Source: Oikopleura dioica
Lineage: Eukaryota; Animalia; Chordata
Length of the DNA: 64,000 nucleotides
Assembly: GCA_907165135.1 (NCBI GenBank)
Contig: OU015568.1
Location: 3,100,001 to 3,164,000 of the forward strand
Direction: 5' to 3'
The stretch's first letter is position 1. Each line of letters starts with the position of its first letter. This document shows positions 1,100-53,428 of the stretch, in pieces. Made by a program: the position numbers and the translations under genes. The notes below the pieces were generated by a model. The model was given only the letters and a program-made list of their open reading frames with translations. It searched no databases and was not told the origin of the DNA.

Positions 1100-1300
1100 T
1101 GAGACAAGCGAATGATGATTCGATTTTCATACCAAATAGACATCAGAGAATGTAAGCAAGTTTTCGTTTAATCCATTTTATGCACTCATTAGAGGATTCT
1201 TCGTGTTTCACTATGGGTCATCTATTGGAACACATCATATAGAGATTCGTCTGAAAGAGAAAGACACCAAGACGTTTCCAGTCGTCGTGATTTGAAACGG
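1100..1300 (+). CDS. 5' exons of beta-propeller/kelch-like family gene, copy 1 (upstream of the transposon)
   Basis: Exons 1100-1151 and 1193-1300 translate SIFIPNRHQRI/GFFVFHYGSSIGTHHIEIRLKEKDTKTFPVVVI*, colinear with PVFIPNRRQGI/GFFVFHFGASIGTHHIVIRRKENDKQVFPVVVI* at about 48610-48786. The more 5' part of copy 1 was not resolved. Confidence 0.75.
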
Positions 1301-1380
1301 GTCTTAAGTTTAGAGTCTAAACTTTAGACCGTCTAAACACGCTCTTTGAAAATAATACCCATTTTCTTGAGTTACTTTAA

Positions 1381-1732
1381 GGATATAGCCGTTCTCAAGG
1401 CACTTTTGTAGCGCCGAAATGGGACGATAAAATTTTTTCATTTCAAGACAGTTCCTACCTAAAATCGTCTGTAGAATTCAAATCTGATGTTTTTCAAAAT
1501 TTTTTTTCAGGAAAATTTCTCTCTAGAGCGATTTGAAATCTTACGATCACTTTTTCTCGAAAATTTTCCATTAAATCGCTAAAACTAAACCGTGTATTAT
1601 AATAAGAAACTATCAATCTAGCTTCTTAGGGCTTCAAAATTTCAAAACTCGACCAAATTTATATTCTAGCGCCTTCTTCTATTCAATCTCTTCTTCTTTC
1701 TCGTTGATGATTCGCTCGCGCGCGACCAATCA
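1381..1732 (+). repeat. Left terminal inverted repeat (352 bp)
   Basis: Reverse complement of 9754-10105, no mismatch seen by eye. The inner end carries a CCAAT box (GACCAATCA). Confidence 0.95.
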
Positions 1733-1989
1733 GCGCAAAACAGCCCGCCATGATTCTCAAGAAGACCCGACCCTCAACCTCAATCATTTTCCATCTGATT
1801 CATATTCCACTGTAGTATCTTTCCTTCGGCCAATAAACAAACTTTCGGAAAATCCGACGAATGATTGAAGAACAGACAAATTGTCTTGATTCTTTCTTGA
1901 ATAAAAGCTTGTCAATCTGATACTTTCACTCAGTATTGAGAAACAATGAGTACTAAAAGCAGTGTTGCAAATTTTTCAATATCATAAGC

Positions 1990-4900
1990 ATGGCAAAGAA
2001 TAATCTAGCTAAGAGGAATAAAGCTAGAAGCAGAAAAAGAAAGAGTTTAGCTGTTAGAAGAAGGCAAGACAAATATGGTAGATTGCTGCCAAAAAGGTGA
2101 ACTTGGTTTTGCTGGTCTAAACCAAAATATGGAAGTGAATATATGATAAATGAAAATCATTTTTTCGGAGCAAAATTCTATCCCCCATCTTTCTTGTGCT
2201 CATCTGATAGAGCAACTCCTGAGGAGTCGATTCATATAGTTTTGAGGGTTTGAGTCATCATGAAAATACTATTTTTCAAGTACCATCTTCGGATCGTCAA
2301 TGCGCGCGTGGATTCCATATTTTGGTTTTACCCTTTTAGTTTGATTTATATTGACAGTATTGAAGTTCTCCTTCGCTAACCACTGCTTCTTCTTCGAATC
2401 TTACCGAATCGACTTGTGAAAACATCGACGATGCTCTTGTTCACCCCTATTCAAATCCCGAAAACAACGCTATTGCCGAAAACCTTGGATGGATCGATAC
2501 ATCATCCTCAACGTTTGGTCATTTCGAGGAACCTCTTGAAAGCTCGATCTACTATCATCATAATGTCGGAGATCACATTGAAGAGCAACAGATCAATGAT
2601 GTAGCAGATCGTCTTCAAAAATTACAGATCACTCATCCTACTCTGCCACAAGAATCTGAAATGTCCATTTACAATCCTGACCAACATGACCCGGTGTCAA
2701 ATGAGCCAGAAATCACAGAAACAACTCCTTTTCCAGCTGATAAATCGGTCGCCCCTGAATATGTCACGAATGTCACGAATGTCACGAATATTTCTTGCGA
2801 AGATGACTCTGATACATGCATGATTTGGTCACAATCAGCGATTGAAGAGCTTGTCAGTAACGTGGCCTGCTCAAAGTGCAACAAAAAACTAAATGTGCTC
2901 TTCTTTCAACCAGATGTGTTTCATTTCAAAGCCAAAATTACATGCGAAACTAAATACTGTCGCGGTGGATTTACTCTGGAAAACACTCCCTCTTCTATAA
3001 ACGATACGATACTTTGCGCGTCGAAATTTGCGGGAATGAGTGCGTCTCAACTGCGTAGATTTTGTTATTTCAATAATTTTGCGGTCAAGGTATTTTTATC
3101 AAAGAAAGTCCTATATTCATTTCTTTAAGAGTTTTACTCAGACTTATCCTGCTCGTTATCATCAGAACAACAAATTCTACACTCGGCGTGCTAAAATCTA
3201 CCGAGAGATAAAAGGTACAAGTCCATATTCTATTGTATTTATTTTGAGATTTGGATTATGTACCGAGGTATTTAGCAGAATGATAGAAAAGGCAAAAAGC
3301 AATTTTGTAGGAGAAAAATGTTTTTTTTTGGAGTGAACTTTTTGTCGAGGCAGAATCTGCATTCATACTTGGTTATTTCGTTGTTCGATTTCTTTGAGCA
3401 CAGCCAGGAAGTTTTTCTTCTTTATCATTTTTGTCTGGTCTAGTATCTTATCTGAACGCTTGCAATTATTTTCCGAAAAACCTACAGTGGTGTGTGGAGT
3501 TGGTGCACCCCTAGATAGCGGGTAAAAGGTGCACAAACGCATCACTCACTTTTGCTACTTCTAGAAGAAAACAATAGAAAAAGTGCGGGTCAGGGGTGCA
3601 CCAACGCAGCACTCGCTAAGGGTGCACCAACTCACTACAATATTGTAACGCCGAAGAAGTATTCCAAGCTTTTACATACCGATAGAATATATCTGCGGAT
3701 ACTCTGTAAAATTCCTTTTGAGGCGGCAAACTCCACATGATATCGACGTTGTGGAAGTCCGAAACTGGGTGGTATTTGATAAGCTTGGAAACATTTTGTC
3801 CTTTATATGCAGATCCGACAGACCAGTCCGGCTCGTCCAGGGTTTTTCTCAAGTTGCGGGAGGGAACAAGAGAGAATATTTCTTCGACCCACTTTTGTTA
3901 CTCGTCCAGCCATAACGAGCTCTTTTTCATAGTTGAATGTACTGTAAGATTTGACAACATAAGTTCAATAATCAACCTTTTCCTGAATAACGAGTTTCAT
4001 CAAATTCGACGAGTAATTCCTTGGATACCAATAGTGCAACATGTCATATGCTGTTTTTCTGATTTTCTTGAGATCCTCCCAAAGACTCTTTCTGTTTCAA
4101 AAGAAACCGCTCTGAGGATGGCCTTTTTTCATCACTGCCTCTTGGATAATCTGGAATTTGCGACAATAGTCGTCGGTTTTTGCCATTTCGAATTCCGAAT
4201 GAACGGAGGCAACTATTCAAAGGGATAGTTTTACTGTCAAAAGATCATTATTAGACATGTGTCGACCAAGATCTAATCTTAAGAATAAGGAAAATAGGTT
4301 CTATCCCTTCCTTTCGCGTTCAACAGAATCTTCCTTCATCAATGGGTCGATGAAAAACTGCGCCCAAATGTCCAGCGCTTCTCTGAACTTACCCGGCGCC
4401 ACGTCGAAATGATAGTTGGCGTATTCGAGCTCCGTACGAAAAGAGAAATGGAAAGCGATAGACAACGGTATCTGTCGATTTTATTGCATGTGAACAACTC
4501 TAAGCGGAAAAAAGTTGGCTCGCCTCAAAGAGAGATGGCGGGCGATATACATGTAGAACGAAATTTGTAAAAAATATGAGTAAGATTCAATATCAATTTG
4601 AACTTGTAGAAGTTGGCTAGTCCATTCGCGCCTTCAGCTTGCGGGTGATGATTTTGTCCTTTTGAATGATGGTTACAGTGGCTCCCCAGCCGGATGCAGC
4701 GTTTCGATCGCAACCAGAAAGCATAGTTTGTGAGACGCATTCGAAAAGCTCCTCCGCTGGCTAAAAGAGTAAGATTTGCGCGAGACCCTGGCACTCGACT
4801 TTTTCGTGAAAACTTCCGGCGCGGACGACCATACAAGCGGCCGACACTTTTCTTAATTTCTCCTCGCCCTCTTCTTCTTCTCCTTCACCGTCGCATTCGC

Positions 4901-7897
4901 TTTTCTCGAGCTCATCGGAGCTCAGGTCTTCTTCTTCTTACCGTTTCGGGCTCTCTTTCATGTTCCATGCTAAAATCGAGCTGATCTCCAGGCCTTCAGA
5001 AAAAGTACCTTTTGACATTCATGTTGGACAAATGCGTCAAAAAATCGTTGTAACTCTCCCTCTCATGAAGCGCCACATCTCTCTCGTCGAAATCATCTTC
5101 TCTACCGAGAGCGAAATCAATCGAAAACTGATTCTTCTGAGTGTCGATTCTGCGTTGCATTTCTAGCTCTAGCGCTTCGAATTCTTCGTTGAAAGCCGTC
5201 ACATCAATTGGTACGTGTGTTGGTAGAACTTTCAAAAGGAAGCTCATGTGCCAAATCTGAATAAAAAAATTAAGGACTTGCGATGAAAGACCAACAAGAA
5301 ATTCTTGACCACTACATGGAGTACTGTGCGAAGAACTCAATTATTCCTTCTTTTTCTGTTGATGGAACGTATCCTTGCAGAAAAGACTCCCCGATGTGTG
5401 CCCTCACTGTCCTGGTTCGAATTCCTGGTCAGTCAGCAAAGGTGGTTCACACACAAATAATTGCTCGCTGGAAGACATGCCAGGATCTCTCCCAGGAATG
5501 GATATAAATTACCTTTGTGAACAGGGTTCGGTATTTTGCATTCTTCGAAAAATTCGCCAAAGACGACGGTGAATATGCTCTTTTTTCGCTGTTGTAGAAG
5601 CTGCAGTAGGTGTTGAATTCTATAAGAAATATTTCATGATTCCAGAATTTGTTTAGTAATTGCCTCGATATAGTCTTTCAAAAGTTATATATTATTGAAA
5701 ATCGAATATCGACAATGAAAAACAAGTTTTGAAATCTTGATTATTGTACCTAAGAAGTGTTCGAAGGCCGCAAGCGGCTTTCTCGCTATTTTTTTCAACC
5801 AAAGTCGGTCTTACCAATTTCGAGCCACAAGTCCCCTTTTTTTATGCGAATGCCAACGAAGCTCTGTCGATTGTGGCTGTCGTTTAGCACCTGGGTAGTA
5901 GGAAAAATCTCCCTCACGATTCGGGTAAAGCCAGAAACGCCGAGAACTGGGGTTCCCTTCACGCCTGCAATTTTCAATTCTTGCATGGCTTTGGTTGTGT
6001 AATCGGTGAAGAAACCCGAGCGGGAGAGCAGCTCGTTTTCGTCGCCGAGTTCGATGCGTTTTCTGATGAAAGCACGAGCGAAATTAGCAGATGCGGCTTG
6101 GATTTGGGATTGATCCTCTCTCGGGCCATTTGCTACTAGAAAAAGTAGAGATAGAATTGAAAAATGCTACCTTGTCCAACAGGTCGCATTTTTGAGGAGT
6201 TTGGGACTTGGTAGCATTACTGTGAACTTCTTGTTGTTGGGACCGGAGAGCGGCTTGCTTGGCATGAGAGGAGTGAACAGAGTTGTGAGGAGTTGCGGGA
6301 TGGGGATTTTGAGCTTGAGATTTTTGAGAATTTACAAGAAGACGTAGTCGAGGGCAGAAAGGAAATCCGTGCGTTTGATCATCTTGGCAGTGAGATTGTA
6401 CCCCAGAAATGGGGTTGTAAGCTGAAAATATGCTTTAAAAGGGGGTCAAGATAGATTTGTTAGTGATTTCCCCTAATTATATCCAAAAAAGCTTCCTGAG
6501 GGCGTGTCAAATGAGCCTTGCTCGTCAAAGAGTCTCGAGGCTAGGGCTTTTAATCTTGCTCTGATCGGATGGAGGGACAATTGTCCGCACACAAGCCATG
6601 AGGCGCTGCACTACACCGCGCTACTAGCCAAGAGATGGGGGCGCAACGGAGCGCGCGCTGATATCAAAATCATCAGCAGGGATCAAAGTCTTTGATTCAA
6701 AGAACACTTCTCGTTGTTTTGAATATATTTATCTAGTACCAATCTAAACAAAAATTTTTTATTTTATCACCTAACAAAAAGATAAAGAATGGTAGCTGCC
6801 CGTTACATTCCTTTTATCGCGCCTTCTTTTGTTCTGCCAGAATTGGACAGATTCTCAGAATTTCTTGAACATATATTATCAAAAATACAATATTAGAACC
6901 TAAGTGCCCCTCACCACGGGGCTTCGCCCCTTAGGTCCTAAGATGCCGGGGTCTAGTCTAGGGTTACTTAGGGTTACCTGCGGTAGATTAGACGGTGATT
7001 AAATTTTTCAAAGAAGAGAAGCTTGTCGGAGTCAGTGACAGTCGGATCAATGAGCGATATCTACACGATGTAATTACAAAAACTCAAGGAGGGCTACAAT
7101 TTTTGAAGGACAATTCTGCAGAAATGACGCCCGAGCTTGTCAAAAACACTATTCTACGAGTTTGGTACCACAATGCGGGAGTGCATACTGACTGTGATGA
7201 TTCTTTTTGCTCTGGAGAAACTTGCTACTTTCCTACATCAGAAAAATTTACAAAAGAAGACTTACTTGTGGCTATCTCTAAGAGTTTTTGTGCGAAAAAA
7301 TTCGACCTGAACAAATTTGCATCTGATATTGCGACTTCGGGCGAAACAAGGTTAGACGCTCAAAACGAAAATATCTGAAGAAATTTTTAGTCGTAACGAG
7401 TCTTTCCACTCTGCCATATTTTCACGATGGCGCAAAGAATCTCCACTTAGTTACAGAACTAAAGATGAGTTTACTACATGCGTCTTCATCTCATCTTTGA
7501 GTTTTAATAACAATGAAGCTGATATTGCGGAAATACTAGCAAAAAAACTCGATCGTCAAATCTCACCTGTCATCATTAAAATGATGAGAAATGAAATCAA
7601 GAAAAGGAATGTTCAAAATAAGAAAAATGGGCCGATACAGAAAGAAAACAGGCGCAAAAAACTAAAAGATTCGAAAAAACTTAGACTCAGGTGAAAAATC
7701 CACAGATCTCAAAACAATTAATTTAATTTAGCCTTTATAACAAGAAGCATGAGTTGGAAAGGGATCGTTCAAATGCTGAAAAGAGAGAGAAGAACCAGAA
7801 CAAAAAGAAAGGTTTTCAAGTTCCAGTGAAGGAAGTGGTCCAAGTCATGCCCCCAGAAAGTTTAGTTGAAATGATGCCAATGACGGAGAAAGGGTAA
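1990..7897 (+). CDS. Multi-exon DDE transposase (Kolobok / 'Mutator-like transposase' domain family)
   Basis: Inferred exons: 1990-2096, 2366-3089, 3130-3214, 5275-~5470, ~6499-6685, ~6989-7350, 7391-~7690 and ~7733-7897. Motifs: CxxC zinc knuckle (CSKC...CETKYC), SVDGTY (first D, 5361), SSKSLE, IISRD, HxxC (HAGVHTDC) and TSRNESFHS (catalytic E, 7398). Several donors and the C-terminal exons are uncertain. Confidence 0.75.
3483..3647. mobile_element. Nested TA-flanked MITE (Tc1/mariner-like ends)
   Basis: GAGTTGGTGCACCC (3497-3510) is inverted at 3620-3633. Degenerate pairing extends to TACA...TGTA ends, with extra internal GGTGCAC(C/A)AAC copies. Confidence 0.55.
3690..4938 (-). pseudogene. 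NRDC: Captured nardilysin-like (M16A metallopeptidase) gene fragment, with introns and premature stops
   Basis: Four segments: acidic tract plus [24 protein letters not shown] (4938-4777); [41 protein letters not shown] (4436-4312); IASVHSEF...[13 protein letters not shown]...[13 protein letters not shown] (4212-3977); [15 protein letters not shown]...[12 protein letters not shown]. They match remembered nardilysin motifs (SAAALCVGVGSF..GLAHFLEH; ALDRWAQFFIHPL; WALPPQ..YRV). Stops at 4097-4099 and 3898-3900. Confidence 0.85.
4617..4760 (-). pseudogene. PSMB3: Captured terminal exon of proteasome subunit beta type-3
   Basis: After a polypyrimidine AG acceptor it reads [47 protein letters not shown]. 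This matches the remembered PSMB3 C-terminus ([39 protein letters not shown]). No other PSMB3 exons were found nearby. Confidence 0.9.
4912..6189 (-). CDS. Transposon accessory gene with RFX-like winged-helix domain
   Basis: Inferred GT-AG exons in matching phases: 6189-6171, 6135-5815, 5785-5750, ~5621-5513, ~5263-5005 and ~4965-4912. Exon 2 ([24 protein letters not shown]...[35 protein letters not shown]) resembles the RFX DNA-binding signature (FGKLIRSVFP...YYGIRLK). Confidence 0.6.
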
Positions 7898-9139
7898 ACT
7901 TATACAGTGTAAATTTTATTCTTACCTTTTCATTAAGTTCCAAAAAAACCAAGTCAAAAGCAAGAACGCCCCTTGGAGATATTTCCAACACGAAATCTTC
8001 ATTTCAACCCTAATCAAATCGCCCAAACAAAAAATGCTATTTTCGCGGGTTCAACCAATTTATGGAAATGATTTTATGGATCTGGGCTTTGATTCGCCGG
8101 TAGGCCAAATAAAGCAATCTTATTAGTTATCCAAAAATGCACCGCCATAAATTTGTTGTGTCTATTTTTACTGAAAATTGAAACTGAAGAATAATGATCG
8201 AAAAATTTCCAATCTCACCGTCATGTCTTTGACCACGTCGCAAAGCCTATGAATTTGCATCCTCAAGTTCGTTTCATTATTTGCAAAATAAGTCTTTTTG
8301 ACTGCTATGCCGCTGCTTCTGAGTTTGCTTCGAGAAATTCTTCTGAGCTTGACTTTCAGTAATTGTTTGCAGCGTTTTGTTCTGTGCGATTAGTTGCGCT
8401 TCTACTTCACTCTAAATAGTTGTAAAATACTGGCAAATGTATCTTTCAATGAAAACAAAAAACAATGCATGGCTGCTTTTTTAGCAATCAAACAAAGTTT
8501 CTTTTCAAGAAAATATGTATTTAACTTTTCAGGATTTTGAACTTTGATCATAGCATGAAGATGGATTGGAACTTTGAAATAGCTTTCAATTATTTACAAA
8601 AGTGAGGAAGAAAAGAGAGAGGCGCTAGAAATTACGCTTGAAAGGAAAAAAATAACGACCCGCGCTGAAATTTGAAACAAGGGCAGCTCGTGGGTATGTT
8701 GCAAGTTATCTAGTAATGAACTCTGAAGACGCTGATAAAAAAAACGAGGGAGTGGCAGATTCAAATTTGTACAGGAGGCAATGGTCTAAGATTGACCACA
8801 AATTGGAAGAATTCAAAGTGTCTTCGCGAATGAATTGAGCTCTTTTAGCGAGTGCTCCTGAATATGATCAGCAGATTTCTAGCTCGGTTTCCGTCGCGTG
8901 GCTGCATATCTAAAGACGTGGCTAGAATTATGCTAGAATAGCACTCCGATGTACCTTGCATTGATGATTTAGAGCCAAAACTTGGACTTTGATGAATGTA
9001 TTGAAGTACTGTCCCAGGTTGTCCATCTTGTATGCACCATTTTCGAAAGACATACCATTCGACGAGTTCGATTTTGGCTTCTCAAGCCGCCTTTTGAAGG
9101 TTTGTTGCTCGCTTTATTTTATTGTTGTCGCACACTTTG

Positions 9140-9496
9140 AAGGTTGAAAAATCTTCTTCTTCTGTCAGAATCGAGTTTCCATGGAGTGCTTGCTGCGGTT
9201 CTGAAGATACGCCTTTGAAGATAAAGCAATAAAAATATAGAATATTGATAGGATAATTATGTTAAGATGTATTTACCTCTTCGAGAGTCATTTTCCACCG
9301 TCTTAGGGCTCTCACTTGGATCCAAACTTGAAACCTGCTCATTTGAAGTGTATTCCGTTGACTGGTTCTCTTCTGGAGACATCTCACTGAAAGAACAATT
9401 TGTCTGGATATTTGCACGATTTGCGTAACAAACCTTGGAAAACAGTTTTTCTCTTCCATGACGATCTCCAGCGCGTGTTTTTGAAGCAGTGATCAT
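9140..9496 (-). CDS. Possible second inward-facing accessory gene, 5' exons
   Basis: ATG at 9496, a 75-codon Ser/Glu-rich exon ending at a GTAAAT donor, then a short AG-acceptor exon near 9213. No recognisable domain. Confidence 0.3.
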
Positions 9497-9753
9497 TTCT
9501 AATAATAACAGCTATCGTAAATTTTACGAATCTTTTAAAAATTAATTGAATATAACAGCAGATTTTGGATAAAAAAGTATCATTAATTGAATTGTTTTCT
9601 TGGGGAGCATATTTTATAAATTGTTAAATTTCTAATATAAATAGTAGTATGGTAAAAAAATAAATAGTGTTCACGGTTTCGTTGCAAGTTCTCGCAGTTT
9701 CTCTCGAAAAAATGAAAATGGGCCTCTCCTCCACGAGAGTTCTCACCGCTCTT

Positions 9754-10105
9754 TGATTGGTCGCGCGCGAGCGAATCATCAACGAGAAAGAAGAAGAGAT
9801 TGAATAGAAGAAGGCGCTAGAATATAAATTTGGTCGAGTTTTGAAATTTTGAAGCCCTAAGAAGCTAGATTGATAGTTTCTTATTATAATACACGGTTTA
9901 GTTTTAGCGATTTAATGGAAAATTTTCGAGAAAAAGTGATCGTAAGATTTCAAATCGCTCTAGAGAGAAATTTTCCTGAAAAAAAATTTTGAAAAACATC
10001 AGATTTGAATTCTACAGACGATTTTAGGTAGGAACTGTCTTGAAATGAAAAAATTTTATCGTCCCATTTCGGCGCTACAAAAGTGCCTTGAGAACGGCTA
10101 TATCC
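9754..10105 (-). repeat. Right terminal inverted repeat (352 bp)
   Basis: Reverse complement of 1381-1732. Confidence 0.95.
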
Positions 10106-10124
10106 TTAACCGACCCATACCAAG

Positions 10125-13148: not shown

Positions 13149-14761
13149 ATGAATTGTGGCTGCTGCTTTGGTGGATGTGTCAGGTAGAATCTTCTACTTT
13201 TACGCGTAAAAATTTTCCCCCAAGAGCATTATGCTGCTGCGGCTCAGCTTCATGTCGAGACCAGGACAACATGGGAATCGAGTTTGCAATGAACTACACT
13301 GGGCTTTCAGTTTGCCACGCAGCAATTCTAGAGCTCAACACTCCTCTCGACCGATCAACCATGACCGGCGCCTGGTACAAGACCCTTCAGACTCATCCCT
13401 TTTTACGCGCAAAATGGTGCAGCGGCTTCATCTCCACAGTCAAAGGAAATACAGAGCCAACCTATTTGGACATAACACAGAGCCAAGAAATGGTAGATCA
13501 GCTGATTTTTCACTCGAACAAAGATGCGAAATTCGCGGAACTGACTGTTTGCGAACAAGGATTGACAATTCAAATTCTAGGTAAGATGGACATTGTCCGG
13601 TTTTCTATTTGATTCTAGTGACGATTCCCCATTCCCTCGCAGATGGAACAGCAATGATGATCATTCTCAACGACCTTCTGAAATTCTACGAAAAGCCGCA
13701 TCAATCTGCGATTTTGGACGAGGTCTATCCCGTTCAAGCCGAAAAACTCAAGCCAGAACTGACCAAAGAAGCCCAAAATAACTACAAGGTACTAACAGTA
13801 CTCAAAAAGTCCTCCCACACCGGGAATCGAACCCGGGCCGTCGGAGTGAAAATCCGAAATCCTAACCCCTAGACCATGTGGGACCTGACCCGCTGCGCAA
13901 AGTCTTATCACTCGACCCAGCCTTATTTTAGGAAAAAGTACTCGCCAAGCAGAAAGAATTCAAGAACATCGTTCCTCATCACAAGTTCGAAAAGCGAAAT
14001 CCCGAGCAGACAAATGTAACGATCGGAAAAGGAACTCCAGAAGGCAGCAAAAAGCTTCTTCATTTTTGTCGAAAGAATGGAATCACGATTGGCACTTTTT
14101 GATGGCCGCGTTCAATTTTGTCAACTCTCGAGTCATTGTAAGTCGATTTTTTCTTTCGTCGTTGATTTTTCTTTCTAGCAAAAACTCGGAAACGAGTTGA
14201 AAATGGACATTGACTACAATCTCCGAGATCGGTTTCCTCAGAAGCTTGGGAACACTGTTGTAGCATGCTACATCGGACTCGGAAGCATTAATCCCAAAGC
14301 TGACTTTAGCGAAACGATGGTCGACGTAGCCAAACGAATCAAAAAAGAAATCAACGAGCAACTTGAAAACCAAGAGCCTTTTATGGTTGGAGCGTTTATG
14401 GAGGCAGCACAAATGAAACCCGAAAATAACCATATCGGTAAATTCTTTCTTCTTTATTTTTTAATAAAGATGTTTTCAAGACGGTAGCGTTAACTTTTCC
14501 AATGTCGGAAAATACAAATTCGACACAGAATTCAGCTTCGGCAAAATTCGCGAGCTTTATTGCTCTGGCAACAAGTGGATCAATTCCTACGAGTACGGGC
14601 TGCTCTTCCAGACAACTGATAAACTCTGCGTTACGATCACCCACCCGGACATGAAAGAATACAACGAAACTGCTCAAATCTATCTCCAAGGACTCATCGA
14701 TGTTGCCGAAGCGCCAGAAGTTTATGGAGATATGACGCTGAGACACTTCGCGAACATATAA
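13149..14761 (+). CDS. CoA-dependent acyltransferase (condensation/PapA5-like fold, HxxxDG)
   Basis: Spliced ORF MNCGCCFGGCVR/ALCCCGSASC...HPFLRAKW...IPHSLADGTAMMIILNDLL...FCRKNGITIGTFLMAA...DYNLRDRF...NFSNVGKY, stop at 14759-14761. Canonical GT-AG introns keep the frame. Confidence 0.75.
13812..13883 (-). tRNA. tRNA-Glu(TTC): tRNA-Glu (anticodon TTC), antisense in an intron
   Basis: TCCCACATGGTCTAGGGGTTAGGATTTCGGATTTTCACTCCGACGGCCCGGGTTCGATTCCCGGTGTGGGAG. Paired acceptor stem, anticodon stem TCGGA/TCCGA and T-loop GTTCGATTC. Confidence 0.95.
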
Positions 14762-44520: not shown

Positions 44521-47445
44521 AGGAGCTCACTTATCGGCTCGTTTTCAATCCCTTATCACTTTTAAAATTGTGCCCCGAGTAGTGCACGATTCGGTTTTCG
44601 AGAGAGAAAGATCCTTTTTCTTCTTTCTGGAGAATAATTCTTGAGAATAAGGAAGGGCAAAAGGAAGGATTAGCGTAGTTAACTTTTCTCTTAATTTTTG
44701 GTGAAGGCTACTGTAATTAAAATTTTGGGTCAACGATGAGATCATTTTTAAATCAACAGGGTGGCGAAACAACACCTTTTAATGCTCAATTAGAAACTTC
44801 AGGAAAGCTGGTCAATAATCTGACCAAGATTAAACGAGGCGAGTCAAGTTTAATTAACTCCTCGCCGCAATCGATTTCACCGTCTCTGTATGTCCGTTTA
44901 ATGGGATGTACGATGCACGGTTAAGTGAACCCCCGCTCCCTGGCACCTGAACGACGATTCCAAGTCCGATTACGCCACAGGTTGATAAGAAAAACCCTTT
45001 CTCAGTTCCTTATCAGCCCCATTTTAAGGGCTTAGAAATGGATAAAAATCTGAAGCTTGTTTTCCGCCCTTATTAAAAAATTACTGATAAGAAGAATTTA
45101 AAGACTAAAAAAAAGTTAAGTCTTTAGATAAAAAGAAGCTTCTTTCGAAGAAAAAAATCAACAAGAAAAGCCGTTTGCGGCTTTTGATTAAAGAAACACC
45201 GCATTTTTCTTCAATTAACATTTTTTAATTATTTTTTAACAAAATAATTTAATAAAAAAAAATTTTTTTTTCATCATTTTTAGAAAGAACTGATTCCTGT
45301 AGTGAGCAAAATACACACCCAAGATGTTTCATTTTTCTCGATTCCAACTAAGCTTTCATCTTCCGATTCTAGCGAGACTTCTGAGTGGAGAGATTCACTG
45401 CCCGTTACCGAGTTTCTCAAAATCATGAATCCTCAAACATTTTGGTGACGAGAAGTTACGGATTTTGTGTGGAAGGGATTTGCACTAAGCCGCATTTTGC
45501 TGTCACCTTTGCGGTTTTGATCCTGATGCTCTGATTTTTAAAGAAAGAGTGAATCTTCCGCCTTGCCTTGGAATTGAGAATTGAGAAGCAGCCTTGTCTT
45601 CGTCTCCATTAAACTTTGTCACGCTCTTGCACGGAATCAAGTGCCCAGTTCAACAACTTTCCGTTTTTTTTTCGTCTCAAAATTCTCTAGCCAGCTTTTT
45701 TCTTTCTTCAAATTATGGAAGAAACAAGATTATCTTAGTACTTTTTAAAAGACAAAAGAGGGGGAAAGACGACCCAAGAAGAATTGCCCTTTAGTAATAA
45801 TAGAATAGTAGCACTAATAAAGAGGAGCTACAAGGAAACAATTATTGAACGAATGGAGATTACAAGATGACTTAAGTTTCCTAGTAATTAGTTTTTGAGC
45901 CTGTTTTGGCTCTTAAGAAGAAGCCTTTTCTATCAAGGATTTAGGTCTTTTCGATTAAAGAAAGAGTACAGTAAAGAAGAGAGAAGGAAATCCACTCTTC
46001 GGACTATCTTTTAGAAAGAACTGGCCTCTGCTCCCTAATCTAAACTCGAGTGACGTTCACGACGTATTTGGGACGCATTTTGCATTTGAAAGCACGGCTC
46101 AACATCCGCCGAACCATAATTCAAATTCTACCTCGTTGCGCGTTTATTCATCCACGACACATTTTCTCCATAACAACCAATCCATCATTACATTTTCCGC
46201 TCTTTCTAAAACTTCATCGAGCAAGACCTCAGATATTTTCGACAAGAAAACGGATAAGAAGAAGACCCTCGAAATTATTATAATGAGGAGGCCTACGACG
46301 ATGAATATGTTTTTGTTCATTTTGTGTTCTTGAGAAAACAAGTGCGGCAAATAAATAAATTTCGTCCGTAGCTATTCGTGGCTAGAAGTAATTCGTGTTT
46401 GTTGTGAGGAACAGTAACAGTTGTGAGCAGCACAAATAATCGCTTGTTGTTGCTCAAGCTGAAACTTAAGTTTTGTTGATTGTTCAGAAGAATGCGGTGA
46501 GCATGCGGATTTCCGGATTTAGTGAACTCCAACCACACAGTGTTGCTGGCTAAGGATTCTCGAGAAAAAGGGTTGAATAAAACTGTTTTCTGTTGCTGAA
46601 TCAAACAAATGAAAAGTTGCTCTAAAATCCCCCTTTTCAATGTCGCTGCATTACGAAACACGAATCAGGGCATCTAAAATAATTAAACTTTCTCACTTAC
46701 AAGCTTTTCCAAATGCTGATATTATATATTGCTGCCGGTTAAAATTTATAATCTCAAACAGCGTCACCATTCTAGCGAAGCATGCGTCCGTGTCGACCTT
46801 GGAAGCTGCGGCATTGCATCGTTAATCAAGACAATATTGCTTTTATACTGCAGCTGGCGCACAATGAGAGTAGCTCTCGTAACTTTTACACCTTTTCATG
46901 AATTTTAAACGCGAGACAGACGAGAGCAACAGAAATTATGAGTCAGATCAGCTTTTAGTTTTCTTTTCTTTGATTCTGAAAACCGTTTCCGACGATTTCC
47001 AGATGACGTAACACATCGGTAACGGAAGTTATGCTCTCGTTCCTCTTTTCAGTAATAAGCCGAATAAGCATTATTGTACTTTGCCGAACTCAAAGCGGAT
47101 AAAACTGACAGCGTTAAAATGTTACTTCTGCTGAGAAATTTCCGTCTTGAAGAATCCGCTTGAGATTTTAACCAACTCAAAATCATTCCGAAAATACTTT
47201 TTCTTGAGAATGCTAGATTTTGTAGAGGATGAGTTTGGAAGGCAAATCCTACAACTGAGATCGACAAGAGTTCGGGTACCTATCGACTTTTTTTCCAAAA
47301 TTACCGTAAATGAATTCTTCAGTGCATGGATTGCGACTGTGTTGGCGTTCTGAAAAAGAAAGATGGAAAGGTATATTTATTTACCGAGGAGGTGCTTACG
47401 ACCCGCAGCATTCACACCCAAAAGCACGATTTTAAGAAGGCAACA

Positions 47446-50400
47446 ATGAAGACTGTGATTCGCGATAGAATGACTCTGGCTAAGCACGGTTTTGCTACTG
47501 ACAAACAACAGCGAACCTATCTTACGCTCGGTTCTCTTTTCTGGATAACAATCATGCTTATAGGTAAGTTTATGGCCATCAACTTCTTTTGATGCTTTCT
47601 AGCGGGCTACGACTCTCTACAAAAATCACGCGTCGTTACAACTTTTCTGACTACGACATGTCATCGTAACTACAAAAAATGCGTGACTCTTGAAAACATG
47701 GACTACTGTGGGCACCTAATGAAGCAATGCTACGAAACAAAAAAATTCATCATTCCTAATCCCATTTCAAAAATACCCCAGCAACAAACAAAAGTTCAAA
47801 CTTTCTCCGAAGAAGAAAACCAAGTAAATCTCCTCCGCTGCCAGAAGAAAAAATTCTATGACCAAAAAATATGCCGTCATTTATGTTCTACAACGCTTGT
47901 TTTGGAGACAACGAGGACTAACCCAATGTCTCCATGTGAAAAAATCTGCTTCGAGCTCACTCGGTCTTTTGATTCAGCTGGAGAGGTTTGCCCGTTTCAG
48001 AAATATTGTCCAGCAGGATGTCCCTGTCCTTTTTATGATTGCGAGAAAGTTGATATGCCGCAGAAATTTATTCCTGTTTTTGATCTCGATGAAACGTCGG
48101 GAAATCAACTTCAAGACTTGTTAGTATCAACCACATCCTCTTCAACTCATTTTGCATCAACCCAGTCGACTGCAAAACAGTCAACAACAACACCGTCAGC
48201 AACAACAGAGTCGACAACAACACAATCAACAACAACACAGTCGACAACACCACAGTCAACTTCTACAGAGTCAACTTTGAGAGAGACATTTTTGATTCAG
48301 ACAACATCATCTGAAATGGAGCAAACTGTGGACGACGTTAATATCCAGTGGATAACTGCTCGATGGGATCATCGTCAATCGACTGAATTGAAAAAATACC
48401 CGCTCGGTCTTTACGATTTCACAAATAATGAAATTGCAGGACAAACGTTGAGGACCCCTCGCTCATTTTATGCCTATGTGAGTGAAGAATTCGCGATCAT
48501 TTAATAAATTTTTAGTCGACCGGTGCAACTTTTCTCAATGGAGTTCATTACTTGGTCGATGCTCTTGGAAATCTGATGAAATTCAACGAACATGAAATAG
48601 AGTCTCCTGTGTTCATCCCAAATCGACGGCAAGGAATGTAAGCTTTTAAAATTTCTTATTTTTACTTCATTGCGTTATTCTAGAGGCTTCTTCGTCTTCC
48701 ATTTCGGCGCGTCTATCGGAACTCATCACATCGTTATTCGGAGAAAAGAAAATGACAAGCAGGTGTTTCCCGTCGTTGTTATCTGAAAAAGGTCAAAAAG
48801 AGACAAAACGAAATGTTGAAAGTCATTTTTGACCTGTTTAAGCTCCCCTACCGGAAGATCAGACAAGTGCTACTATTACGCAACAGACTACAATTTGAAT
48901 CGTTTTGAAGAAGCACAGGGTTTTATCGCCAGCAACCATTTTAACGCGAAAACGTCTTCCATCAGCTTCAAGGGAGTATTTTACTTGATGAGTGTCAGGC
49001 TTGGCGAAAACTACATCAAACTATCGACAACGATTGCATTGAATAGAATCAGGAAAAACGAAGAAATGGAGAAAGGATGGAAAAAGAACGAAATCGCTTT
49101 GCCGGCAAGATTTCGAGATTTAGACCCTGTGCACGTTGTCCCGTTGATGGACGTAAAAAGGCTTCTTCTTGTTCTAGTTACTCGTAGCATTGTCTTATCA
49201 AACACTCAATATTCTTTATTGCTCGAAGCGGAAGGAAAATTCATCACTCTGGGAAGCGAGTGGATAGGCTCACTCGTCAAATACGAAGAAAAATCAGTAT
49301 GTTTCTCCTGGTTGTTCGCTCAGAATGACTTTCTCTACACTGACCTAAGAGGAATCAACAACGATGAATGCGAGTATTTCGGCAATGGAATCATCAACAA
49401 TGAAAAAATATTTATCCAGAGCTATGTTTTCGATGCTACGTTCGAAATAGTATTCGATTTCGACTTTGTTGAGCTTGATTTCGTTCAAAAACGAGCCGAT
49501 GAAAAAATTCACGTCACAAGCAATCCTCATTTTGCTTTTCATGACGATGTCTTTCCTGCGTTTTCCAAAAATGCTTTCCGCCAACGTCAATTTCCACGGC
49601 TTCCAAGTTTAAAATTTCCACCTTATCCAGTAACAATCGTTCCTGATAATTATTTCTCATCTTTAGCCGAGCAAAAACATATCGCTACTTTTGAGATAGA
49701 TGTTAATGGAACAGAGAGTTTCAAAGCAGAGCTTAATTCAAAGAAAGAGGATGTCTTAGAGAGCAAAAAGATTCTTGAGCTGCAGTTTTTCGACGGCAAG
49801 AAGTTCTTTGGATTGGAAAGACTTATTAATGGCTCAACTTTATTCTATTCTGATTATTTCAAAAACTCGATTCTTCATTTCAACACATCAGACTTATCTG
49901 AATTTGAATTGAAATTGCACACTGATCAATTCTCTCAAAAACATACAGCGGAAATTTCGGAAAACAGATGGAAAAGTGAGGTAGATGCCGATTTTATTCA
50001 AAAACAATGCACCAAAAGAAAATGCTTAAAAGAATCCTGGTGTCGACATTGGTGTCGGGATAAACGAAATATGGGTCACAGAATAACTGCTCATGTTGAA
50101 GGACTCTTGAATAGGGTCGACAATAGAATCCGTGTTTTCAAGTTTGATCGAGAGACTGAAATCAAAAATTTCATTTATTCAAAAGAAAAGGAAAGTCAGA
50201 TCAACATTATCCGACCAACCTATGGCGACTTATTAAAGCATTACGTTTTATTGCATGATGGATCAAATCGTACTTTGTCGATCAAAGCTCCGTCTGATTC
50301 TACGCGCACACTCGGCGACTACACTGTTCTCTCAAAACACGCTTATGTTCATGATCAATTCCACATTTTCGGAGGCCATTTTAATGAACGCAAAGTAATT

Positions 50401-51438
50401 CATACATACATCTTTAGTATACTTAAGTATAGTTAGAAGGCGTTGTAGTCATGTTTCTTCGACCAAGATTGCGCCAAACTATAAATAAACTATTGATTCA
50501 ATAATAGTTCTTAATAAGAGCTTCTTATTAAAAAACTTCTTAAGATTGCACGGTTAGATGGATGTGAATTTACCGAATTACAAGTTAAACTCCTTGAAGA
50601 TTACCGAAGTGGACATTCCGTATTACCCATAAATAATGGTCAGCAAGGTAGTAAATCAGTGACGCTCAATTTCTTGTTTATTTGCTTTCCATTCGGAACG
50701 AATGATTCGAAAATTATTTTTAGCAATTATTTGTTTTGGTTATGCCTCTGTTAAATATACAGATACAAGAGAAAAAGATTGCGAACAGTTCGACGGAATT
50801 ACCGTTAACCCGATCTCGAGAACAAATAGTGAGCATTGGAATGGGGGATTAGGGCTTTATCAAGGACGAGCAACTGTCGTTGGAGGCTCGTATTCAGAAG
50901 GAGCCACAGAAACATTAATGGATGACGGCTGGGTTTATCTTTCTTCGCATCCGAGGTTTTCCCTTACTATTGACATTAATTTAACAAAGGTTAAGAAAGC
51001 TAGAATATGTTACTACTGTTGGGCTTTCTTCAGGGGTTCTATTGACGACCGGAGGAAAAGAGTGGAATGGTCCACTATTGAATGATATTTGGCGGCTTAT
51101 GGACAATCGTTGGTTTCATCTCGGCCACCTTAACATGGTAAATTATTATCTTGATCAAGTATATAAAAACAATCTCAGGCAATAATGAAGACGACGACGT
51201 TACTACTCAAAGATTCAATCTATGTTTTACCTGGCGAGACAAATGAAGATGCAAGACCTATTCAACTAATAACTTTAGGTAAGCGCTAAAGGATTGACGG
51301 GACCAGTTGTGTTTATCTCATTTTTCAGATTTTGGGGGCCACCAAGTCCGGACTGAAAATATAACCAACGATCGTGCACCTTATTCAGTTGAATATCCAA
51401 TTGCTTTTGTCTCTCCCATTAATTACTGCAGCCTTTGA
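47446..51438 (+). CDS. Type II membrane protein: Cys-rich domain, Thr/Ser mucin stalk, beta-propeller/kelch-like C-terminus (copy 2)
   Basis: N-terminal TM (TYLTLGSLFWITIMLIAG), CPFQKYCPAGCPCPFYDC, STTTQ repeats, a 535-codon open frame, then IARLDGCEFTEL, AIICFG and LGLYQGRATVVGG. Stop at 51436-51438. Contains an internal in-frame TGA at 48784-48786 (see findings). Confidence 0.8.
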
Positions 51439-51612
51439 GACTCAAAGTTTGAGTAGTGAATAACCAACTTTTTTTTCTGTATAATAATATGTATATTGGT
51501 ATTTGCGACAAAAATGGTTTGAACTGTTTGACAAGTTTAAAAGGTAAAAATTGATTAAATAAAATATCTTTTTTTTTTGCAGTAAATTTTCAATTTCAAT
51601 GTTTCTATTTTT

Positions 51613-53428
51613 TCAACTGCTTTGCAACGCGGCGCCGGCAATTTGCTCGAAATAGGCAAGAGAAGCCGCTTTTTGTTCTTCCGTCGGCGAAACCAGGTTC
51701 GGAATCGATTTGTACATTTTGTCCCTCAAGAACTCGCCGTAGACGGTTTCTGACCAGGCGAGATGCTTGCACTTGTCGGTCGGGTGCGGTCGCAACTTCG
51801 CGCCCAAAATCCAGGGTTTTTTCTTGAACGGCTCGTAGGACTGAATACATTCGGTTTCGGCGGCTTTTTGCTCAGCTCGGAAAGCTTCCAATTCTGAGTT
51901 CATTTTGTCGACGCCAAAGGCTTCTGAAAATCAGGATCGACATTTTATTAAATTCATGAAATTAGTCTCTTTTTTCGTGAGTATCATGTTTTTCCTTCAA
52001 TTCTCGATCCCGTTCCTACTCGTTTCCAAAACGTAGTATTGAAATAATCGTACAATTTATGATCTGCGTGGTTCCACTCCAAAATTTTCTTTGCCAGTTC
52101 CGGGTTCATTTCTGCTTTCGCCTCTTCCGTTCTCATCTTGAATTTGATGTAGACGATGTCGTCCCAGTCCCAGCAAAGCAAGTGCTTCATCAGAATCAGC
52201 GACTCGTCAAAGAAGTCCGTCAAAAGAATCAGAGTAAAATTCTCGTCCATTTCTGCGATGGCCTGGTCTACGTACGCCTCGTCCTCCGCCCGGTTCACGT
52301 CGTAACCGATGTCGAAAAACATGTGGTTTTTGGATCTAAACAAGCGTTTGAGAAGAGAAGGATTAAATGAGACAGAATAACGAGAATCGAGATTGTCTGG
52401 ACCAAAATCGTAAACAATTAATTTATCCTAGGATGTCATTTCTTACCTGAAGTACCAATCAGTATCTCTTTTGAAATACTTCGCTGGGTCAGCGTAAAAA
52501 GTCTTCAATCGTTCTGTCGTCGTCACGTCCCCGAGCCACTCTTCGAAAGGCATTTGATCCTGGAAAAACCCGAAAACGGACTCGACGTTGTCGACTGGGG
52601 AGCGAATGATGGTGACGTATTTGGTGTCCGCGGGCATGAATTCGTCGAGTTTTTGCTTGTTATAGCGGAAGTGGTGGCCCAAGACGTCGTAGGAGGTCAG
52701 TTGCGGGTCTTTGGCGGTTTTAATAAGAGGATGTTGACAAGAGAAATTCTTTATTTTTCAAATTGATCTGAAAACCGCTCCTATCAAATGGTGGTCAATA
52801 AAAGCAGGGTATCCGCCAAGTTCCCATTTTCCCTCCAAAGGAAGTCCAACAGTCAAATTGTGAGTGTCCGCGAATCTCAACATGATATTCGACATTGTCG
52901 AGCTTCCAGTTTTGTGAGTTTTGAGAAAAGCAACATGTCTGCTTGGCCCGTTCTCGCAAGTTGGAAATTGAAATTGGGGAGAAACCGCTGCGATTGGAGC
53001 GGACATTTGTTGGACGTTTCCTTGTTGTTGTCTTGTTCGCGTTTTTTAAAGAGAGAGTTTATGTTTGGACGCGGCTGATTTTAGGCCGGTGTGTTTTATG
53101 AGAGCTATAAATCATTATTTTTAAAACGGCTAAGACAGCAATTAATCAACATTTGAACTTTTGAAAAAGTAATTTAAAAAAATCAATTAATTTTTAGTTT
53201 TTAATTCGTCTAAAGAAAAATCTTGATCGAAAGAGTTAGGACTTAAAAACGATTCCTGATCTGCCCCATTTGACCGCGCATCCTCTGCAAATTGGGGTTG
53301 AAATTTCTGACCCGTCGCGCCGAGAGCGAGTCCGAAATTTCGGGATGGTTGATAGTCCAGAGCACGTACGCGCATAGAACCACCAAAGTCAGCTTGATAA
53401 ATGGTGGCATTTTCTGGGAACGCACCAT
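51613..53428 (-). CDS. Galactose-3-O-sulfotransferase family (Gal3ST)
   Basis: Type II anchor FIKLTLVVLCAYVLWTI. 5'-PSB FLKTHKTGSSTMSNIMLRF, 3'-PB YVTIIRSPVDNVESVFGFF, NHMFFDIG, FDESLILMKHLLCW and WNHADHKLYDYFNTTFWKR. Confidence 0.92.

Follow-up and report, generated by a model that had tools for sequence, protein, structure and literature searches.

A conserved in-frame TGA in an Oikopleura dioica gene family probably marks a cysteine codon split by a non-GT intron

We examined 64,000 nucleotides (nt) of the Oikopleura dioica genome (contig OU015568.1 of assembly GCA_907165135.1, positions 3,100,001 to 3,164,000 of the forward strand; hereafter, the window), which hold two copies (copy 1 and copy 2) of a protein-coding gene family whose open reading frame (ORF) meets a TGA at a position where other family members encode cysteine. 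In the explanation that we favour, with a probability of roughly 0.82, this TGA is not decoded: a phase-2 intron without a GT donor splits the conserved Cys codon and is removed by a permissive spliceosome with the help of an RNA helix. The exon would end in TG, the intron would start with A and the next exon with C or T, and removal of 48786-48842 (copy 2) or 1295-10124 (copy 1) would yield ...V-V-V-I-Cys-Ser-Pro-Thr-Gly.... The joined product would read ...GTTATCTG^CTCCCC in the window (ATCTG^CTCCCC; carets mark splice junctions) and ...GTCATTTG^CTCTCC in a paralog. We infer that Oikopleura's permissive major spliceosome removes the intron, because its 3' AG never varies and is preceded, at 10-12 nt, by a yUnAy-like TTGAC, and we propose that the helix juxtaposes two weak splice sites and thereby aids splicing.

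A junction layout shared across the family

The sequence that had drawn attention to this codon in an earlier note on the same DNA was borne out in both copies. Copy 2 reads TTT CCC GTC GTT GTT ATC TGA AAA AG^GT and, at the acceptor, ...tttaag^C TCC CCT; copy 1 reads TTT CCA GTC GTC GTG ATT TGA AAC GG^GT and ccaag^T TCT CCA (the caret before GT marks an alternative donor discussed below). The four differences within the encoded FPVVVI are indeed all synonymous, and of the 34 codons of the upstream exon, 15 differ synonymously and eight non-synonymously between the copies. The peptide of that exon, (I)GFFVFHFGASIGTHHIVIRRKENDKQVFPVVVI in copy 2, is conserved in 14/14 aligned family members. The same note had stated that more than 500 open codons follow the TGA, which is true of copy 2 (530 after the acceptor) but not of copy 1, where ordinary introns break the frame after about 109 codons and the protein carries on by homology.

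Aligned at the TGA codon, as had been suggested, the intron-bearing copies read TG^A...AG^Y (Y, C or T) and the intron-less homologues read Cys. Eleven distinct copies (paralogs or orthologs) have the common layout [A/C]TY TG^AAW..GG(G)TCAAAA....TTTTGACC(C)..AG^Y TCN CCN, namely the two in the window (c2 and c1), L002 from the Bergen reference genome (FN653388), L003, L005, L012, L013, L014, L016, L018 and L020, with duplicates merged (L003 = L004, L009 and L010; L005 = L006 and L011; L016 = L017). The 5' side was TG^AA in 11/11 intron-bearing copies and the 3' side AG^Y in all ten with a complete intron, in which the first base of exon 2 was C in five, T in five and a purine in none. This base toggles between C and T among close relatives (c2/c1 and L003/L005), and its restriction to these two letters is as expected of the third base of a TGY codon. 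The TG^A...AG^Y arrangement is far beyond chance.

Four intron-less homologues (L001, L007, L008 and P0025) read V-I-Cys-Ser-Pro exactly at the intron site, with the letters GTA ATA TGC TCG CCT in L001, GTC ATT TGC TCT CCA in L007 and GTC ATC TGT TCT CCG in L008. L001 and L007 are genomic DNA and not complementary DNA (cDNA), since other introns are kept in both. Three more database ORFs terminate exactly at ...VV[V/A]I-stop, and cutting from the A after TG through the AG restores the V-I-C-S-P reading in every intron-bearing copy. An apparent Trp (TGG) at this site in P0036 came from a code-4 gene call; the DNA reads TGA.

Comparative evidence shows the predicted splice product to be TG^Y, encoding ...VVVI-C-SPTG.... 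The proposal, one of three in the earlier note, that splicing after TG rebuilds TGC in one copy and TGT in the other is strongly supported by the four intron-less Cys homologues, by a precise intron loss (below) and by the fit of 11/11 copies, and it is the only one of the three that works for all copies. Among the family's most conserved residues are the 50 that precede the first Met of exon 2 (SPT.R.DKC.YY..YNLNRFE.AQG.IASNHFNA). Because both these residues and the upstream exon are conserved as protein, both exons have to be part of a single translated chain. The neighbouring upstream intron is of the GT-AG type in 9/9 copies examined, with lengths of 39-67 nt.

Precise loss of the intron in one homologue

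A maximum-likelihood tree of the exon-2 region (18 rows and 325 columns; some rows short, and L008 on a long branch) placed the intron-less L007 among the intron-bearing c2, c1 and L020 (support 98/99 and 96/96), and a second clade of 11 rows was entirely intron-bearing. An approximately unbiased (AU) test, with the group chosen after the tree was seen, rejected all intron-bearing rows lying together on one side of a branch (p = 0.0002). Because L007 is nested among intron-bearing copies, we take its loss of the intron to be secondary and precise. It is also without the adjacent upstream GT-AG intron, which c2, c1 and L020 keep. Joint loss of neighbouring introns is a classical signature of recombination with reverse-transcribed messenger RNA (mRNA), and the joint loss in L007 is the pattern expected from recombination with cDNA. 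On that reading, its ATT TGC TCT would be a fossil record of the natural splice product. One metagenome sample holds both the intron-less L007 and the intron-bearing L020, so intron presence varies among paralogs within one population or species.

Intron borders and a terminal helix

With the 3' AG kept, the intron borders are AA-AG and the base at +1 is A in 11/11 copies, which bears out the earlier suggestion of a splice-site class outside the GT, GA, GC and GG donors. Sliding the cut to GA-AA (GA-CA in L005) gives an identical mRNA. The two registers are equivalent because exon and intron both end in G, and RNA sequencing (RNA-seq) is unable to tell them apart. With the GA kept, the 3' end is AA in nine copies and CA in one; neither register combines a G at +1 with a 3' AG, the combination that characterizes Oikopleura G[T/A/C/G]-AG introns. 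A true GA-AG cut at this site would shift the frame. The acceptor is AAG in nine of ten copies, and the stretch from the TTGAC motif to the AG has no pyrimidine tract.

Close to the two ends, 5' GG(G)TCAAAA and 3' TTTTGACC(C) are complementary in 10/10 complete copies. The predicted terminal helix (GGTCAAAA/TTTTGACC) is conserved and encloses nearly all of the intron, leaving 4-5 nt free at the 5' end and 7-9 nt at the 3' end, starting at +5 or +6 and ending at -8 to -10 in each of these copies. The inverted repeat near the termini measures 6-12 base pairs (bp), with a perfect 12 bp in L005 and a 5-bp GGGTC/GACCC core in copy 1, and duplex energies range from -7 to -16.5 kcal/mol. Eight introns were folded, seven of them short in their natural state and the eighth that of copy 1 after in silico removal of the transposon; in each, the helix closes the minimum-energy fold, with z-scores of -1.0 to -5.0 against mononucleotide shuffles, and it is the RNAalifold consensus structure. 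The first 15 nt of the intron are 72% identical among paralogs, versus 43% for the neighbouring GT-AG intron. One helix column shows an AU/GC double change, with an extra G matched by C in L003 and L005 and independently in c1, and further compensated pairs occur in c1 and L020. Both this near-terminal hairpin and the purine-rich AAG acceptor add to the earlier note, from which they were absent.

Within the 64-kilobase (kb) window, the helix motif does not behave as a repeat: the paired motif occurs once, and GGTCAAAA occurs seven times against 5.2 expected, which is the chance rate. When the window was scanned for further AA..AG segments that join two ORFs and carry a terminal helix, only this intron came up, and the reversed or complemented controls gave none. 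No direct repeat (target-site duplication) flanks the intron beyond the single slidable G.

RNA and protein evidence

Reads from three bulk oligo-dT runs and one single-cell run, all under the same species label, were placed on 47200-52000 at 90% likeness and gave zero coverage of the gene, hence no test of the junction. We also carried out a word search with 39 sampled 31-mers from L009:1497-1900 (exon, intron, exon; a Bergen-type paralog), in which two genuine metatranscriptome runs each held 0.74 of the words. If all words overlapping the intron were absent and both exons were covered, the expected share would be 268/374 = 0.717. The observed share fits expression with removal of the intron, and does not by itself reveal the identity of the missing words or the position of the junction. 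A protein search with the junction region returned only the intron-less P0001 and P0019, and an exhaustive search through cluster representatives gave, in addition, P0025 and three ORFs ending at the TGA; a long query admitting proteins up to 1274 amino acids gave nothing new, and there was no spliced form among the cluster members.

Several points weigh against the split-codon explanation. Neither a read nor a cDNA across the junction was seen, the gene having zero read coverage, and the protein databases searched held no transcript-derived protein spanning it. Genome-like runs and several runs of unknown type, labelled 'RNA?', hold 1.00 of the L009 words with the intron included; if any of these 'RNA?' runs is truly RNA, then some transcripts are unspliced. 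The helix shows little covariation, most pairs being invariant, so the two arms could be conserved for separate sequence-specific reasons, for example with TTGAC serving as a branch site. Finally, an A at +1 paired with a 3' G is disfavoured in characterized spliceosomes, as known from yeast and mammalian 5' splice-site genetics.

Partial read matches (X4-X6) were confined to 51500-51560, past the 3' end of copy 2, where they were 90-99% alike and had unrelated flanks. The site has the look of a short element, repeated or transcribed, that other loci also carry.

Alternative explanations

The alternative that survives best, which we nevertheless consider unlikely, would reach the same TG^Y mRNA by non-spliceosomal excision, with cut sites measured from the terminal helix as in euglenids. 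With A at +1, an AAG acceptor and no pyrimidine tract, neither end of the intron is typical of spliceosomal splicing, and the conserved helix with nearly fixed spacers of 4-5 and 7-9 nt resembles the Euglena code (PMC12501133). However, the invariant 3' AG and the branch-like TTGAC 10-12 nt upstream look spliceosomal, and Euglena has a different helix motif, different spacers and R instead of Y at the start of the exon. The intron, moreover, occupies a single position with no other instance in the window scan. It also counts against such excision that we know of no helix-guided machinery of this kind in animals.

The earlier note had also considered splicing from an upstream in-frame GT donor (GTTTCC), which would join 48764 to 48843 in copy 2 and skip FPVVVI together with the TGA, with a TGA-ended short isoform possible from unspliced RNA. 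A GT in the right phase is present in both window copies (CAG GT^GTTTCC and AAG AC^GTTTCC). Most copies lack such a donor: a codon-by-codon check (L012-L016 lay outside it) found no phase-compatible upstream GT in L002 or L005, and GTTTCC was seen only in the window's two copies, L020 having a phase-0 GTTTTT, L018 no GT and L003 only CA^GTCTTT. The FPVVVI codons that would be skipped are conserved as protein, with mostly synonymous changes that speak for purifying selection, and are present in the intron-less homologues. We regard this route as unsupported and very improbable.

Hardly more plausible is a genuine stop, in which case the product of the intron-bearing copies would be truncated to an N-terminal protein, the downstream ORF being dead or expressed on its own. 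No transcript evidence was obtained from the read placements, all public gene models break at the intron and a very young 8.7-kb transposon sits in the intron of copy 1, each of which would suit a stop. Against it, 11 paralogs keep 300-530 open and conserved downstream codons, only C or T follows the acceptor, and words from both exons occur in two metatranscriptomes. A separate downstream cistron is unlikely because the family's most conserved part, the SPT.R.DKC stretch given above, precedes the first Met of exon 2.

Recoding of the TGA is the least credible of the alternatives. In this scheme, the GT located 5-6 nt after the TGA (48792-48793 in copy 2) would be the donor and UGA would be read as selenocysteine (Sec) or read through, giving VVVI-U/X-KS-SPTG from junctions of the form ...TGAAAAAG^CTCC or ...ATCTGAAAAAG^CTCCCC. 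The donor is in frame in 7/9 copies checked, and the aligned codon of homologues encodes Cys, the situation of Sec/Cys pairs, but an extra G puts L003 and L005 out of frame. It would also add two non-conserved residues (KS, NG or IR) that the intron-less homologues lack, and the precise loss in L007 left TGC directly before TCT CCA. The earlier note had seen no selenocysteine insertion sequence (SECIS) by eye, and Rfam agreed: at gathering score, it gave only a transfer RNA (tRNA) in the whole window, and no SECIS family was found in 48600-52600 at E <= 5. Even without splicing, copy 2 keeps its TGA in frame with the downstream ORF, the 57 nt between them being a multiple of 3, and a second in-frame TGA lies within that stretch (48817-48819), so plain readthrough of unspliced RNA would need two recoding events.

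Other candidates were also rejected. The stem of only 8-12 bp does not suit a mirtron, and there were no matching local structures for bulge-helix-bulge or IRE1-type cleavage. Adenosine-to-inosine editing of the +1 A, which would create an in-frame GA-AG intron, is conceivable but unlikely, with +1 outside a helix of only 8-12 bp. A U12-type intron is at odds with the 5' site, which is AAAAAGG or similar in all copies and not ATATCC or GTATCC; the U12 branch motif TCCTTAAC in copy 1 was created by the transposon end and the TTAA duplication. For an origin from an introner or a miniature inverted-repeat transposable element (MITE), inverted repeats are present, but a target-site duplication and related copies were not found in the window.

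Features of the two window copies

Coordinates are collected in Table 1. The transposon in the intron of copy 1 is about 8.7 kb long (1377-10109), and its insertion is very recent, given terminal inverted repeats of 356 nt that are 100% identical and a TTAA duplication; copy 1 may be impaired by it. About 14 nt from the copy 1 acceptor, the transposon's right end and the TTAA together spell ATATCCTTAAC, similar to a U12 branch site. In L012 (48-331), the same intron is 284 nt long and holds a palindromic, MITE-like insert of about 230 nt with GCGAAGC-rich arms between the helix arms, and the L018 intron is also enlarged by repeat-rich sequence including CCCTAA-like runs. Mobile elements appear to insert often into the non-canonical intron. 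Just past copy 1, the minus strand carries a tRNA gene at 13812-13883 (Rfam tRNA, 61.6 bits).

Table 1. Positions in the window of the proposed split-codon intron and its surroundings
Feature	Start	End	Strand	Remarks
Copy 1 homologous exon	1193	1294	+	102 nt; ends ATT TG; TGA at 1293-1295
Copy 1 candidate AA...AG intron	1295	10124	+	8830 nt through transposon; helix arms GGGTC 1299-1303 and GACCC 10112-10116; acceptor 10124^10125
Transposon in copy 1 intron	1381	10105	.	perfect 356-nt inverted ends, arms 1377-1732 and 9754-10109, TTAA duplication included
Copy 1 downstream exon	10125	10452	+	first base T would give TGT (Cys), then SPTGRVDKCYYY...
Copy 2 upstream intron	48638	48683	+	GT-AG, 46 nt; borders GTAAGC...TCTAG; internal control
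Copy 2 exon	48684	48785	+	102 nt; codes (I)GFFVFHFGASIGTHHIVIRRKENDKQVFPVVVI plus TG of the split Cys codon
Copy 2 apparent in-frame TGA	48784	48786	+	exon TG plus first base A of the proposed intron
Copy 2 candidate non-canonical intron	48786	48842	+	57 nt, phase 2, AA...AG; equivalently 48785-48841, GA...AA; acceptor 48842^48843; basis: intron-less homologues with TGC/TGT, 11 copies, precise loss
Copy 2 predicted helix, 5' arm	48790	48799	+	AGGTCAAAAA; intron positions +5 to +14
Copy 2 predicted helix, 3' arm	48826	48835	+	TTTTTGACCT; intron positions -17 to -8; includes yUnAy-like TTGAC
Copy 2 downstream exon	48843	50433	+	first base C would give TGC (Cys), then SPTGRSDKCYYY...

Protein family and its gene models

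The window contains two copies of the family, and matches of the downstream ORF were only unnamed Oikopleura dioica proteins and marine metagenome ORFs. Pfam gave no domain for the downstream ORF and, for the family, only a sub-threshold DUF7495 hit on the Cys-rich N-terminus, and an ESM Atlas search returned only weak Kelch or LamG-like leads, below 0.9. The AlphaFold2 model had a mean predicted local distance difference test (pLDDT) score of 39, too poor for use. Family members start with a signal peptide followed by a Cys-rich module (read from L001); a Thr-rich linker is also present in copy 2, and the junction region is followed by a C-terminal part with HIFGG/VVGG-type repeats. This is probably an orphan appendicularian family of secreted proteins. 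Outside the window, P0038 (1044 amino acids) has eight units that resemble the junction exon and were likened to GTHHIVIRRKENDKQVFPVVVICSPTG. The module ending in ..I/L-C-SP may be an older domain that also occurs outside this family, as in P0038.

All NCBI Oikopleura dioica models of the family that we examined (about ten Bergen proteins) start inside the 3' end of the intron or further downstream, for example P0007, P0010, P0013, P0041 (CBY15428), P0063 (CBY07423), P0069 (CBY06780), P0048/49, P0055/56 and P0066. The P0007 model invents a first exon and enters via the 3' end of the intron. Such breaks are as expected if the annotation pipeline could not place the splice site, and with models starting in or after the intron, databases lack the signal peptide and N-terminal domains of this family.

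Discussion

Non-canonical G[A/C/G]-AG introns make up about 11-12% of Oikopleura dioica introns, with GA-AG the commonest (PMC8008620, PMC7072748). The TG^A intron shares with them the organism group, a short length, a 3' AG and an A at +2/+3 as in GA-A donors, and presumably it is handled by the same permissive major spliceosome. Unlike GA-AG introns, it has A at +1, a conserved terminal helix and an AAG acceptor (9/10), and reading it in the GA register leaves a 3' AA or CA. Published GA-AG donors are flanked by an exonic AG upstream and an A downstream, AG^GAA (PMC7072748), whereas the exon before the TG^A intron closes with [C/T]TG (or, once the cut is slid, [C/T]T), with the downstream A present. 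We found no description of AA-AG introns in the literature. The intron is a variant of the Oikopleura non-canonical introns, known from a single old position.

Among other appendicularians, Fritillaria borealis has AG-AC, AG-AT and other introns that are thought to derive from MITEs (PMC11282704, PMC13326754). These likewise start with A and are processed against the GT rule, and an origin from transposons with inverted ends has been proposed for them. In contrast, the borders here are AA-AG, one old position is common to paralogs where Fritillaria has thousands at lineage-specific sites, and no repeat family or target-site duplication was found in the window. The non-conventional introns of euglenids follow the code N3-CDG...CH'G-N5-6^R (PMC12501133) and share non-GT borders, slidable boundaries and a terminal helix at short, near-fixed spacers. 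They differ in helix motif (CAG/CTG there, GGTC/GACC here), in spacers (3/5-6 versus 4-5/7-9) and in first exon base (R versus Y), and the AG invariant here and the unrelated taxon limit the likeness to analogy. With selenoprotein genes that have Cys homologues, the family shares an in-frame TGA aligned with Cys; unlike in those genes, the TGA straddles the exon-intron border, no SECIS was found in the Rfam search and splicing would rebuild TGY.

A bolder interpretation, which we think unlikely, is that this is a structured chordate intron type whose cuts are set by a terminal helix with short fixed spacers and not by a G at +1, through a modified major spliceosome or other machinery. It could then be the first example of a class missed genome-wide by annotation pipelines.

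Oikopleura serves as a model for the limits to which the major spliceosome can be relaxed, and G at +1 is common to every exception described there. Those rules would be stretched further by an old intron that at least 11 paralogs retain and that combines A at +1 with an AAG acceptor and a conserved helix; its short form (57-76 nt) offers a compact natural substrate for asking how structure substitutes for splice-site sequence. Splice-aware re-annotation that allows AA-AG would repair the models of this family and could reveal further cases. For genomes with non-canonical introns, the family also illustrates that a conserved in-frame TGA aligned with Cys is insufficient evidence for a selenoprotein.

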